64,000 nucleotides of DNA from assembly GCA_977030845.1 (NCBI GenBank), contig OZ365113.1, positions 13,392,001-13,456,000 of the forward strand, given 5' to 3'. This document shows positions 17,002-37,200 of this stretch, in pieces. The notes under the pieces are model-generated. The model saw nothing but the letters and a program-made list of their open reading frames with translations, was not told where the DNA came from and did not search any database. The position numbers and the translations under genes were made by a program. Source of the DNA: Fimbriosthenelais zetlandica (taxonomy: Eukaryota). Within the stretch, counting starts at the first letter, position 1; each line of letters opens with the position of its first letter.

Positions 17002-17872
17002 ATGAGTCTCCAGTGGACGTTTATCGCTACCTTCCTTTACACGGAGATCTTCCTTACAGTTCTGCTTCTAGTACCCTTCATCTCTGCCTATAGGTAGGTC
17101 AGAAGTTGATCTCTTTCCATAGTACTGAAAGTTCTCCTTAAACTCTATATCTGCTCTCGTACGGTATGTGAAGTGGAAAAAATCCATTGCCCTCCTTGTA
17201 ACCTTCCACTCTACTACTAAATAAACTTTTTCCAGCCAGACGTACCGGGTATTTTCAAAATAGAAGTACCTCATTACTCCAGTCTATTTGTACAGAGAGA
17301 AAGGAACTCTTGTTTACACACTCAATGGCATACCACCAAATCTTTCTGCTCCAATAAATTTATTACTTTTGAAATGGTACGTTTGGAATGTTCCAGCAAA
17401 AACGATGATTCGGATGTATTGCCATAACAGTATTGCAATGAAAGTTGATGCTCAGTGATGAAACAATGACTATTATTTTTTAGATGGAGTCGAATTTTCA
17501 AGTCCAGACTACTGAACAGTTTCCGGACACATGCTAACATATATTTCAACATATTCATAGTCGTGTTAATAATTCTTTTCTTTGGTGAGTATTAATCATT
17601 ATCCTATTGTTATGCTTATGTTAATGATATGAAAATCAGTTCATAGCAATATCAAGATAAGTGTCCGAGTAACATTGGCTACAATTGTTTTATGAATACA
17701 ATTTTCCACTATTTAAACCAAAACCTAAATATACATGATACCGGACTTTGAAATGAGATTGTCTTCCTTATTTGCATTTAATTTAACAAATCTTAATGCT
17801 ATTTTATGTCTAATTCTTTTTCTACCAAGGGCACTATGAAACTAAGTCTTATTCTATCTTTAGCAATAAATC

Positions 17873-17903
<31 letters not shown>

Positions 17904-20900
17904 TGGTAACATCCCAGGATTCCTGCTGAAGACCAGATTTCTAGATCAAGAATTATCTACTTGTTAACCCGGTGTATTATTTCAGTAGTATTATATATAG
18001 AAACCTACATATATTTTGTGCCTATTAATCACAAATTTCAGATGCTATTCGTGAAGTAAGAAAGTATTCGGGAGCTGACATTGTGGACATGAATACTAAT
18101 CCACAAGCTGAGACTTTAATTCACATGAAGTTGTTCAGGGCCCAGCGAAACTTCTATATCGCTGGCTTCGCTTTGTTCTTATTCTTGTGAGTAATACACA
18201 TAACCTTGTTATAGCCCTGTTGTGGTGCACTCAATGAATTCATGGGATTCTTTTAGGGGACAAAGTTTTTAAAAGCCATTGAGCAATTTCGATTTTACAC
18301 TAAAATCTAAGGGAAAATACTGCTGAAAATACTCTTGAAAATTGTGTTAACAAAACTGAAATCCTTTATAAAAAGCCCTCTGGAATTCACTACCCATGGA
18401 TTCATTAGGTGTATTCTCTGAGCTCTGTGGAGATACAGAGCCAGATATGTTTGTATAGTAATAGCTCAATAATGTATATATCTTTTGTGTGACACATTGA
18501 ATCAGATGCCATACGCGATACGATGAAATACACGAGGGAGCGTCAGGCTCAGTCTCAGACAGGAGCGGACTTCCATGGTCAGGTCCATAGCACCCTCACT
18601 GACATGAAGATGTTCCGATCACAGAGAAACTTGTACATCTCGGGTTTCGCTATGTTTCTCTGGATGTGAGTAGTGGGTGGAAAGCATCCCACGACCCTCC
18701 CATAACTAAAACTGGGTGACAGCATCAGCAGCTTGCTTCACAGAAAAAAAAACAATTGCTAGATAATACCAAGGATAATCACAACGTGGGGGCTTTTCAT
18801 TAATATCTCCATTTATAACCGTGCAAAAAGGGAGCAGCTAAAGGAATATAACACATCGAATCCCACCGTCAGACCGTTATCTATTTCATGGAAATTTTTA
18901 TTCGAACGAGCATGTCTGTACAAAATCTGGATTCTTAAGACCTAAATAACCTCTCTGGTTAAATACTGGCTTTAAGGAAGTGTCCAAATACATACCTCTA
19001 CATCCGACCTTTTGTTAATTACAGTATCTTTTGACAGTCCTTAGTATATAGATTAACCTCACACATAGCTGCAAAGGTCACAGTTCCCTCACAATTGCAC
19101 TGGCCTAATTGGTATTTTCTAAAGTGCTAGTTTATGGATGGCGTCTCCGCCTGTTCCATCCTTACTAATTAAACTTCACTTTTGTTAAAGTAGATAAGAG
19201 TATCCCTAGTTCACGTTTCCTGTAGATATCAAGCTGCCGATCTAAACCTGTTTGTACTGACGGAAGCATGCCAGCCCTAACACCCCTGGCACATTACTGT
19301 TTGGAGTTAATTTTTAATTTCCCATTGCTCTGTTACTTTGAATTGTGTGTTGAGAATGAGTCTCTTGTTGAGTCCTTCCTTTTCGAACCATACCCCTCAA
19401 CCATTAGAACACCAACCCAATTTTTCTAAAACAAGCTCTCATTTATGTGTTGATGCACTTTAACATACCGATAACTATGAAATATATTAGGGCCATGGGG
19501 AACAAAATAATATAGACATCCACTTTATAATATATATAGTGATTTCGATGCATCATTGATTGAATAGGAACAGGCCTGTGAGTGGTTCCTTAACACCTAT
19601 TGATCTGTCACTTCCCTACTACCGTAGACATTTTTGCAAATTGTTTTGTAGCATAGTATTTTACACGTTAGATTTTGTAACGATGTATTACTTATTTTGA
19701 TTTTTTTATATCTATAACAGACATCCGTAAAACTTCATATAGCATTTTCATTTAGGTGTTGGTATTGACCATGACAATTTGAATAATCATAAATCATTTG
19801 AAGTTGCTTTCTTATAATATTGTGTTTTTCTTCGAATTTTCATTGCTCTAGGACTAAATTTATCATGTACTGATCTCTATGATCATTATACCCTACACAG
19901 GGTCCTGCGTCGCCTTGTGACACTCATCTGTGACAAAGCGCAGAACGAAGCACAAGTCGAAGCTTTAAAGAGACAGGCAGAAAGTGCCACTGCTACCGCC
20001 AAGAAATTGCTTGAAGACACTGAAAATAAGGTAAAGGTAAAGGCTTTCACCCCAACTACTATTTCTCTCATTATTTCCTTCCTTTTACCTGAATCCATTA
20101 AACTTGAAATCGTCATTTCAATATTTGATTGCTTGTTCTTATTACTTTCATTTGTTTTTTAACCCAAAAGTGATACATTTTCTATATTATATTGATAATT
20201 CTCTTTTAAAATCATATAGGCGAATGAGAAGGAAGAAAAGTCAGCTGTTGCTACTGAGCTTGAAAACACAAAGAAGGATCTTAAAAGATCTGAAGATGGT
20301 GAGTATAATTATTTTAGTTTTTTCAAAAGATAACACCCTTTGAGTGATGTGCTTATAGTTCGGTCAAAGGTGTGCTTATTTGCAATATAATTGTTAACTG
20401 CGATCTTGCAAACCAGCGCTAATGGTGTCGAGCATATTTTTTTTTTTTTTAATTTCAATATTGTCTCCAACAAGTTTTAAAATAAGGAACTGGCAAGATC
20501 TCTATGGCATATAATACCAGAAATCCTAACTAATGAACAAACATTGTGATCCGGTGTTAATGTTGTGTAAACACTTGTGCAATCACACCCTGGACAGACA
20601 AGAGCTGGTGTGAACTGTTGTATAAAATGATAGGCTCATACGTACATGTATTAATCTTTGTATTTCAGAAGTGAAAAAGACCAAAAAGGACCTAGAAGCC
20701 ATGAAGAAACAGGCCGAGGCGACCAACACAGAGTACGACCGCCTGGCTGAAGAGAACAGATCCCTACAGGTAAATCTAATATTTTATAATTATGTTAAAA
20801 TTCTCATAATATTCTAAAACTACTGTCTGTACAAATTAGGTTGATCGACTTAGTTTGGACAGACTATAGAATCTTTCACTTCCTATTCTATTGCATGTAT

Positions 20901-21000
20901 CAAACATCACATTCCATATTTTAACAATAAGATGCACTCTTCTCTTCAGAATAAGCTCCAAAAGGCGGAGGGTGAGAGCGGAACTAAAAAGGAGAATTAA
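17002..21000 (+). CDS. BCAP31: B-cell receptor-associated protein 31/29 (BAP31), ER membrane protein (232/237 aa)
   Basis: Exons 17002-17093, 17484-17584, [18042-18186 or 18506-18665], 19901-20030, 20220-20298, 20669-20769, 20950-21000. MSLQWTFIATFLY..., MKLFRAQRNFYIAGF, coiled coil, C-terminal KKxx (KKEN). Co-ortholog of BCAP29/31. Confidence 0.95.
17873..17904. repeat. (TTAT)8 microsatellite
   Basis: Perfect tetranucleotide run in a BCAP31 intron. Confidence 0.95.
18042..18186 (+). CDS. BCAP31: BCAP31 alternative exon 3a
   Basis: AG/GT bounded, 145 nt, phase 1 to 2: DAIREVRKYSGADIVDMNTNPQAETLIHMKLFRAQRNFYIAGFALFLF. Confidence 0.9.
18506..18665 (+). CDS. BCAP31: BCAP31 alternative exon 3b (paralogous duplicate)
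   Basis: AG/GTGAGT bounded, 160 nt, phase 1 to 2: DAIRDTMKYTRERQAQSQTGADFHGQVHSTLTDMKMFRSQRNLYISGFAMFLW. Confidence 0.88.
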
Positions 21001-34257: not shown

Positions 34258-37200
34258 TTATAGCTCCATATCTTGAGCTTCATCTTCAGAGAAGTCACTC
34301 ATGGAACTTTCACTAGAGGTGGACATTTCTTCCTGTTCGCGCAAGGCCTCTTCCGTTGCATACTTCTTGACACACTCTGAAAGGAAAATGTTAAATATGA
34401 TTCATCAACCTTAGCTAATAACAATGTTTTCCGGTGCTCATTGATTACAAACATTTTATCTACCTTGGACCTTTCGTTTGTATTCCTCCGGTTTGTGTAG
34501 GAACATTGCTGCTGCATCGCCATTAAGAGGGTCGATGGGATTTGGGTATGTCAGCAGTTGTGGAAGAAACGATTCAAAGATGTTGGACAGATCTATAGAG
34601 AAATTATCAGAAATATATTAATAATAATGACACATGCAATTTCACACATCCAAGCACAAAACATACTCTATACATAAATGTGTATATATTGGAATTTGAA
34701 ATTCCTTATTAATTGAGATGAGATTAGCTAATGTACCCACCGTATAAAGCAGTCCAGGCTTGGTTGATGACATCCAAGCAAACCGTGCCAGAACTGAATG
34801 ATAAGATTTTATTATGTAGCAACAAAGCGAACTCTTAACATTCATCTTCTTCTTCTTTCGTCGATTTGAAGGCTGTGAGCCTATTGGTCGCTTGTTGCCT
34901 CTGTCTGAGCTTACACCATAATCAAGCGCTATCGTACGGGGAAGTTATTTAAAAAGACATTGGGAATGTCAGAGTATTGTTGGTCAAATATATTATCAAG
35001 TGTAATGAGAATATGATGAAACACATGACGACTTGCTATATATGGATAAGTGACTAATGAGATAGGAAAAGACTACTCACACTTCATCTATATTGGGATG
35101 AAAAATCCTATTCATGAAACCTGAAGCATGAAAAAAGGAAAATATGAATGATGACATCATATCTATAGATCACCTCATACACTCAGACTTATTTAAGACA
35201 GCTCTTTAATTAAACGAACTAATTTAAAGTTGTATGATGAATAAGTGATGACGATGATGCAGGCATCAAGACACAATTTAAATTTATATTTTGGTCCTGG
35301 TAACAACTCCATTTTACATGGCATCTGATACATTTGTCCCTTGATAGAAATGAATTTCCATAGTATTGAGGCAACATTAGAGCTCTGCATCTTTGCAATA
35401 AGATTCTGACTGACTTACCTATAGAGGGACTCTTGAATGGATACTTCTCAGGCAAATCCACACGTACCTTCCACACACCTCCCTCATATGGAGCTGTAAA
35501 AGACAAATATCATCATCCATTATTTATCAGGGACTCGGATTACAACCACATGAGTTTTTTTTATCAAGCAGTATTTCCCAAATCATGACCTAACACGACT
35601 CTGCCAACATCTAAACATAAAGGGTGNNNNNNNNNNNNNNNNNNNNNNNNNNNNNNNNNNNNNNNNNNNNNNNNNNNNNNNNNNNNNNNNNNNNNNNNNN
35701 NNNNNNNNNNNNNNNNNNNNNNNNNNNNNNNNNNNNNNNNNNNNNNNNNNNNNNNNNNNNNNNNNNNNNNNNNNNNNNNNNNNNNNNNNNNNNNNNNNNN
35801 NNACAATCAAAATATGGTAATTTTCATGTAAATTAAGATTTATGCTGGTATATGGTTTAATACTCATTGAAAGCTTCTTGGGGTACCATTTGAAATAATA
35901 CGAACTATGGATTTTATCTTAGCATCACTCAACCAGTACAAAGCTCAGATGATCATGAAATGCATGTCTGAGTCACTAAGCCTAGCCCAACCATAGTGTG
36001 CTTGTGGGAAATACATAAGAAATGTCAAAAGCTTCCTCCTAACCTAGTACTGAGCTTATACTAGTGTTAACAAGTGGCCTCTGGTGTTCCTAGTGACTCA
36101 ACCCTGGCAATCTGCCCAGTCTGTGTCCAAAACAAAGGCTTGGTTAAGGTCACATCAAGCAAATAACATCAGTCAGTGTGATGACACTATAAACCAATGG
36201 TTCTACAATGGAAAAAGTGCCCAGCCACTGCCCGTTAAGGATTATATTAGAGTCATCTTCTAGACTGCATTTTCTTCATTCTTCTAGCAAAACAGATAAC
36301 AGTAATATGCATGAATAGGGTTGGAAGGGTATAGAATTTTATATATAATATATTTAATAGATGTCCCCATTACATAAAATTGCACAGCCTACACCTTATA
36401 TTCATGTTTATTTAAGCCCTCCGTTACACATATTATGGTAACTTTCCTCAATATTGTTCTACTCATCGCCCATCATTGACCCATTCTGGAGGATGATAAG
36501 TAACACAGTATACATTGGAATTTATGGATGCATATGCAAAAATTATATGATCCATGAGGATCGGAAAAGTTTTAATGCTGTTAGATAACTATTTCTTACA
36601 TAAAACGAAGAAACATGCTTTGGGAGCTCAGGTACTCGTAAGACCAGATATTCTGTAAATTTAATTTTTGTCTTTACATTGGTTAATCTTCACAGTTAAT
36701 CTTTTTTTCTGCTAAGTTCTTTCCTTTCAAATCTGAATGACTCAATCACATTTAGTCAGAACTACAGAGATCCAAAGCAAATGATTTTTAAAACATCGTA
36801 TCTATGTATATTATCGGAGTCTCAGGTGTGAGGGTGAGTAGGCAGGGAGGGCAAGCCTATGAGAAGTGAGTGTATATTGCTAGGTTTGCGGATCATGTAA
36901 CACCTGTAGTACATGACGCTACCATCTCTAACCCGTTGCTTCAACAGCCCCAAACATTCCCCCTCGTGGAGCTCTAGCTGGAGCAGGGACGGGAATAGGC
37001 CAAAGAAGAACTGTTCATAAATGGCTAAGAGGTGCAAACCTTGCCAACAGTGATGTTCTTTCAACAGAAACATATTTTGGTATATAGGTATTCAACCACA
37101 GATTTACAGAAGAAGTGAGTTTAGGCATTACAGTAAATTAGGCAGAGGTGTAAGCAGGTGGCTTAAGAAATTCATATGAATCAGAAAACAAGGAACTAAA

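Follow-up and report, generated by a model that had tools for sequence, protein, structure and literature searches.

The BAP31 gene of the annelid Fimbriosthenelais zetlandica carries two adjacent versions of its third coding exon, 3a and 3b, which are very probably tandem duplicates used as mutually exclusive exons, such that a single gene would yield two BAP31 isoforms. BAP31 is an ER membrane-protein chaperone and a widely studied factor in ER sorting and quality control. The gene lies within a stretch of 64,000 nucleotides, hereafter termed the window, and the exon pair displays, at the level of genomic sequence, every hallmark of functional, frame-enforced mutually exclusive exons. In each mRNA, exon 2 would be followed by one of the two, 3a or 3b, and this in turn by exon 4. 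The two predicted proteins would have TM1 and TM2 in common, along with the coiled coil of the cytosolic part and the terminal KKEN, and would differ at the tip of the lumenal loop between TM2 and TM3 and on one face of TM3. We infer that both isoforms are expressed in the window species.

The gene extends over positions 17002-21000 of the + strand and was reconstructed as seven coding exons with AG/GT at all borders (Table 1). Positions 2-115 of the Pfam profile PF05529 (Bap31) are tiled by exons 1, 2 and 3a or 3b; exons 1, 3a and 3b each score above the cutoff, and exon 2, which covers positions 33-63, falls below it when taken alone (17.5 bits vs 22.7). The spliced reading frame ends in ...SGTKKEN and a stop codon, a KKXX-type ER retrieval motif, and the protein displays three hydrophobic stretches. 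Their orientation was borrowed from the BAP31 topology deduced from charge rules and protease protection, in which the N-terminus and the TM2-TM3 loop are lumenal and the tail is cytosolic (Ng et al. 1997, PMC2139787). A Bap31 profile search of the whole 447-Mb genome revealed a single BAP31-family locus and no second BAP31 or BAP29 locus. Because there is only this one locus, the BAP31 diversity described here derives from duplication of an exon and not of a gene, as the preliminary description of this DNA had proposed. The sole run of Ns in the window (35627-35802, 176 nt) is located far from the BAP31 gene.

Table 1. Features of the BAP31 gene, with positions numbered from the first nucleotide of the window
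Feature	Positions	Strand	Length (nt)	Splice sites	Content
Exon 1	17002..17093	+		donor AG/GTAGGT	start codon ATG at 17002; TM1; Pfam Bap31 positions 2-31
Exon 2	17484..17584	+		acceptor TTTTTTAG/, donor G/GTGAGT; next intron phase 1	cytosolic loop and TM2
Exon 3a	18042..18186	+	145		canonical version; lumenal loop and most of TM3
Inter-exon intron 3a-3b	18187..18505	+	319		
Exon 3b	18506..18665	+	160		divergent version; same segment as 3a
Intronic element	18666..18743	+	78		directly 3' of the exon 3b donor; conserved with the relative
Exon 4	19901..20030	+		acceptor CACAG/, donor AAG/GTAAAG	TM3 end and start of cytosolic tail
Exon 5	20220..20298	+		AG/GT sites	cytosolic linker; spliced frame open throughout
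Exon 6	20669..20769	+			coiled coil; Pfam PF18035 Bap31_Bap29_C, E 2e-11, 44 bits vs cutoff 30
Exon 7	20950..21000	+			C-terminal end KKEN and stop codon

Exons 3a and 3b are each preceded by CAG and followed by GTGAGT. Both are flanked by an upstream intron of phase 1 and a downstream intron of phase 2, starting at codon position 2 and ending after codon position 2, and the lengths of both are 1 mod 3. Alignment of their peptides scores 94 under BLOSUM62, compared with -21 +/- 9 in 1000 shuffles (maximum 21; z about 12), and both match positions 65-115 of the Bap31 profile (E 7e-14 and 4e-12, respectively). Of the two, 3a resembles the exon found in most lophotrochozoan BAP31 proteins. At the protein level they are about 43% identical and their synonymous sites are saturated; the duplication is therefore old. 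An assembly or haplotype artefact was rejected on the same two grounds of low identity and synonymous saturation.

When the exons were joined in silico, splicing in the order 1-2-3a-4-5-6-7 gave an open frame of 232 aa and 1-2-3b-4-5-6-7 one of 237 aa, both extending to the KKEN stop, whereas including both exons or neither shifted the frame and produced premature stops. With a length of 1 mod 3 in each exon, the reading frame itself would enforce exclusivity of the two at the protein level, and mRNAs carrying both exons or neither would meet early stops and be truncated and probably NMD-sensitive. Among other routes to exclusivity, steric hindrance was rejected by inference, the inter-exon intron being too long, and incompatibility between U2 and U12 sites was rejected because all sites are GT-AG. 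The exon coordinates, lengths and peptides given in the preliminary description, together with its claims of homology, of intact splice sites in identical phases and of a frame shift on joint inclusion or joint skipping, were all borne out by these results.

When 1.8 billion representative proteins were searched by profile with the 3b peptide, a 65-aa ORF, P0001, was retrieved that shows approximately 85-86% amino acid identity. P0001 lies on two genomic contigs, L004 and L005, from the Logan assemblies of ERR14368248 and ERR14368249, respectively. The complete orthologous gene, introns included, is present on these contigs, and 3a and 3b both occur there with the splice sites and order seen in the window. 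Exons 2 and 4 of the window gene show 94% and 93% amino acid identity, respectively, to this relative (L004). A short-ORF search with P0001 retrieved only P0001 itself, and among the matches listed for the 3b-peptide, P0010 and P0072 queries no full-length protein carried a close 3b-type exon, the genomic ORF of the relative being the only such match.

The preliminary description had proposed estimating dN/dS for both exons and had regarded degradation of 3b in a close relative as evidence against its interpretation. Comparison with L004 yielded an omega of 0.16 for 3a and of 0.09 for 3b (dS 0.88, dN 0.079; Fisher p 1e-7), about 16 of 31 synonymous sites but only 9 of 122 non-synonymous sites having changed in 3b. 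The relative's 3b is intact, with an open frame and conserved AG/GT sites, and a single in-frame indel of 3 nt separates the two. By contrast, the introns are unalignable, with the sole exception of a stretch immediately following 3b, and the inter-exon intron measures 299 nt in the relative. Judged by these substitution patterns, both exons are under purifying selection and 3b is no relic.

It is highly unlikely that 3b is a pseudo-exon, a duplicate that is unused or in decay and beside which only 3a is ever spliced in. Such a status would accord with the presence of the canonical version in nearly all lophotrochozoan BAP31 proteins, whether annotated or assembled, and the polypyrimidine tract of the 3b acceptor is modest, with no YTNAY motif within 60 nt. 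However, the low omega at a dS of about 0.9, the open frame, the intact AG/GTGAGT sites and the lone in-frame indel have persisted where intron similarity has been erased, divergent exons are also kept in Capitella and Lamellibrachia, and an exon of the divergent type occurs in an intronless full-length contig (see below).

A role for 3b mainly as a poison exon, which would be included together with 3a and lower BAP31 output through NMD, is extremely unlikely. Joint inclusion does introduce a stop within 3b, a long way 5' of the final exon junction, and conserved intronic flanks of the kind seen after 3b are typical of regulated alternative and cassette exons. Nevertheless, selection has acted on a frame that is read only when 3b directly follows exon 2, and the match of this frame to the Bap31 profile extends from end to end, whereas a poison exon has no need of a conserved BAP31-like frame.

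The conserved stretch following 3b (Table 1) is the only part of the introns alignable with the relative, at 85% identity over about 78-79 nt, and it is single-copy in the genome. We consider it a candidate splicing regulator on account of this conservation, and the choice between 3a and 3b is presumably regulated, perhaps through this element. It matched no Rfam family and was not conserved beside the divergent exons of Capitella or Lamellibrachia. RNA pairing of the docking-site/selector type was sought by an inverted-repeat scan and by duplex scans of the element against the remaining pre-mRNA, in both the window and L004, and yielded only noisy, non-conserved candidates. Its sequence includes G-runs, an invariant tract, GGTGACAGCATCAGCAGCTTGCTTC, and, close to the donor, a possible GxGGGT/ACCCTC stem.

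The segment encoded by exon 3 runs from the end of TM2, at a split D codon, through the TM2-TM3 loop and into TM3, of which it contains 12 residues. It had been assigned earlier to the lumenal loop and TM3, which agrees with its encoding the TM2-TM3 loop and most of TM3, the loop being lumenal by the topology of Ng et al. 1997 (PMC2139787). AIR-x-x-KY follows TM2 in both versions, and both likewise retain MK-FR-QRN-YI-GF before and within TM3. The differences lie in a loop tip of about 20-25 residues, consistent with the strong loop difference first reported, and at TM3 positions 1, 4, 8, 11 and 12. These TM3 positions fall within a 100-degree helix arc, and only 4 of 792 subsets are equally tight, in a test that was picked after the data had been seen; the one-face pattern is not repeated in Capitella or Lamellibrachia. 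A further difference, the replacement of A in YI-A-GF by S, T or V, is recurrent in the divergent copies of most lineages. No entry covering the membrane part of BAP31 was found in the copy of the PDB that was searched.

The BAP31 loci of other animals were scanned by tblastn, which the preliminary description had suggested for lophotrochozoans, and with an HMM of exon 3. Two exon 3 copies, the canonical followed by the divergent, occur in Capitella teleta (about 270 nt apart) and in Lamellibrachia satsuma (about 1 kb apart), and the divergent exon of the latter shares ...T-LTD-K-FRSQRN... with 3b of the window. Aplysia californica and Elysia crispata also carry doublets, with the divergent copy preceding the canonical one, as does the amphioxus Branchiostoma lanceolatum, while Owenia fusiformis has three complete copies. 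Single copies are present in Helobdella robusta, in the nemertean Tubulanus polymorphus and in the caenogastropod Batillaria attramentaria. Every exon 3 copy in every species scanned has AG/GT sites and the same phases, such that all are 1 mod 3.

Some of these loci show additional features. On KB303412.1 of Capitella teleta (L007:3172-7088) the block of exon 2 with the canonical and divergent exon 3 is present twice, 3182 nt apart and with identical peptides, which points to a segmental duplication of very recent date or to an artefact of the 2013 draft assembly. The Owenia triplet (L011:10083-13031) is entirely of the canonical loop type, and the annotated protein P0079 uses the middle copy. 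Two neogastropods, Nucella lapillus (P0016/P0020) and Babylonia areolata (P0019/P0022), each have two BAP31 genes located on separate scaffolds, the gene and not the exon being duplicated in these species.

Indirect evidence for alternative use of the two versions is available from heterobranch gastropods, where gene models and transcripts contain one exon version or the other, varying between them. RefSeq lists BCAP31 isoforms X1 and X2 for Aplysia californica (XP_005090966.1 and XP_005090967.1), both of 246 aa and differing only at residues 67-108, and for Physella acuta (XP_059165505.1 and XP_059165506.1), both of 236 aa and differing only at residues 70-108. These pairs correspond to the situation in the window in gene family, in the exon concerned and in the two isoforms, predicted in the case of the window, that differ only there, and in the Aplysia genome, as in the window, both copies lie in tandem. 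The gastropod order, divergent copy first and canonical second, is reversed in the window and other annelids. When the fetched proteins were screened for isoform pairs identical outside exon 3, none was found besides the window's own pair.

The nearest full-length homologues of the window protein were transcripts, and the best-ranked named proteins (query P0072) included those of Capitella teleta and Lamellibrachia satsuma. A complete BAP31 protein of 238 aa, P0147, which the P0010 and P0072 queries brought up together with the gastropod variants, has an exon 3 segment of the annelid divergent type (...KLFRSQRNLYMTGMAVFL...) and is encoded without interruption on an intronless contig of 1349 nt, L013, from SRR8812956. 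The contig is apparently a spliced mRNA, this being the simplest explanation because every genomic copy examined has introns at those positions. Judged by sequence similarity, its source is probably an annelid of a species other than that of the window.

The number of times that the exon was duplicated was addressed with a maximum likelihood tree of 56 exon peptides over 48 columns. Five annelid divergent exons group together (86/86), a grouping to be viewed with caution given its long branches, and the divergent exons of heterobranchs constitute a clade inside the gastropod part of the tree (100/97), away from the divergent exons of annelids. The amphioxus divergent exon pairs with the canonical exon of the same animal (94/64), and the Owenia copies fall among annelid canonical exons. 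Two alternatives withstood AU tests, namely a duplication confined to the lineage of the window (p 0.215) and a common origin for every divergent exon (p 0.32). The tree, the opposite exon orders and the single-copy lineages lying between those with doublets together favour several independent duplications, and the gastropod divergent exons probably arose separately from those of annelids.

Tandem-duplicated mutually exclusive exons constitute a known class, and repeated independent origin within one gene family is given as common in PMC9741552, the main text of which makes no mention of BAP31 or BCAP31. The window pair resembles members of this class in comprising adjacent homologous exons of equal phase that arose by an old duplication and with both copies under purifying selection. 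Isoforms that are identical apart from one homologous segment are likewise common to the class and to the window gene, for which they are predicted from genomic sequence. On this evidence the pair is very probably a real mutually exclusive exon pair of a well-known kind, with gastropod isoforms already in RefSeq. The same logic, whereby exon duplication and alternative splicing replace gene duplication, underlies the concept of internal versus external paralogy, which is a concept and not a family: homologous exons alternate in one lineage where another has gene duplicates, reportedly as in tropomyosin, and it is said to have been discussed by Irimia et al. in 2010 and Abascal et al. in 2015, as cited in PMC9741552.

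The pair had been presented as apparently undescribed. This stands insofar as no relevant paper came up in a literature search that combined BAP31 with splicing terms, but pairs of isoforms distinguished by this segment alone are already annotated in RefSeq for Aplysia and Physella. The added interest resides in the repeated doubling of one exon across phyla, a pattern for which that search found no paper.

Paralogous genes likewise provide some organisms with two versions of this three-helix ER membrane protein. Vertebrate BAP29 and BAP31 form heteromers (PMC3742741), as do Yet1 and Yet3 of yeast (bioRxiv 10.1101/2024.05.09.593285). In both cases the pairs are whole genes that differ along their full length, whereas the window isoforms would differ in only about 50 residues (loop 2 and TM3) and share the cytosolic domain. 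By analogy, the isoforms may plausibly differ in their membrane-protein clients or BAP31 partners, and they could possibly form mixed oligomers in the manner of the BAP29/BAP31 or Yet1/Yet3 pairs.

We regard it as very unlikely that the pair, although real and mutually exclusive, encodes functionally equivalent isoforms, with a neutrally drifting duplicate kept by chance or for dosage or regulation only. The motifs AIR-KY and MK-FR-QRN-YI-GF, conserved in both exons, are compatible with equivalence. Set against this are the long retention of the pair under strong constraint that extends to the divergent loop, the occurrence of this exon as a doublet in annelids, heterobranch gastropods and amphioxus and as a triplet in Owenia, the heteromers made by the vertebrate and yeast paralogues, and the recurrent substitution of A by S, T or V at YI-A-GF in divergent copies of most lineages. 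A natural isoform pair confined to the loop tip and one TM3 face would mark the part of BAP31 that evolution has repeatedly diversified, and a single gene with two such exons offers a clean swap experiment.

A more far-reaching proposal, which we advance tentatively and consider rather doubtful, is that the loop-2/TM3 module is a hotspot of convergent duplication in animals and fungi and that BAP31 functions optimally when two TM3/loop variants are mixed in one oligomer. The duplication would then take the form of an exon doublet in pleistoannelids, heterobranch gastropods and amphioxus, of a triplet in Owenia and of gene pairs in vertebrates, neogastropods and yeast. If this were true, mutually exclusive splicing in animals with a single gene would supply the 'BAP29-like' partner that is encoded by a separate gene in vertebrates. 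The recurrence across phyla, in parallel with the BAP29/BAP31 and Yet1/Yet3 pairs, provides a clear case for the theme of exon versus gene duplication.

Recognition of the doublet also exposes incorrect gene models that read through both exons. The deposited model KAK3768916.1 of Elysia crispata (329 aa; L006:8169-8592) and a deposited 298-aa 'BCAP29' of Branchiostoma lanceolatum (L008:4780-5600) each join both alternative exons, partly via intron read-through, and both are probably annotation errors caused by the exon doublet.
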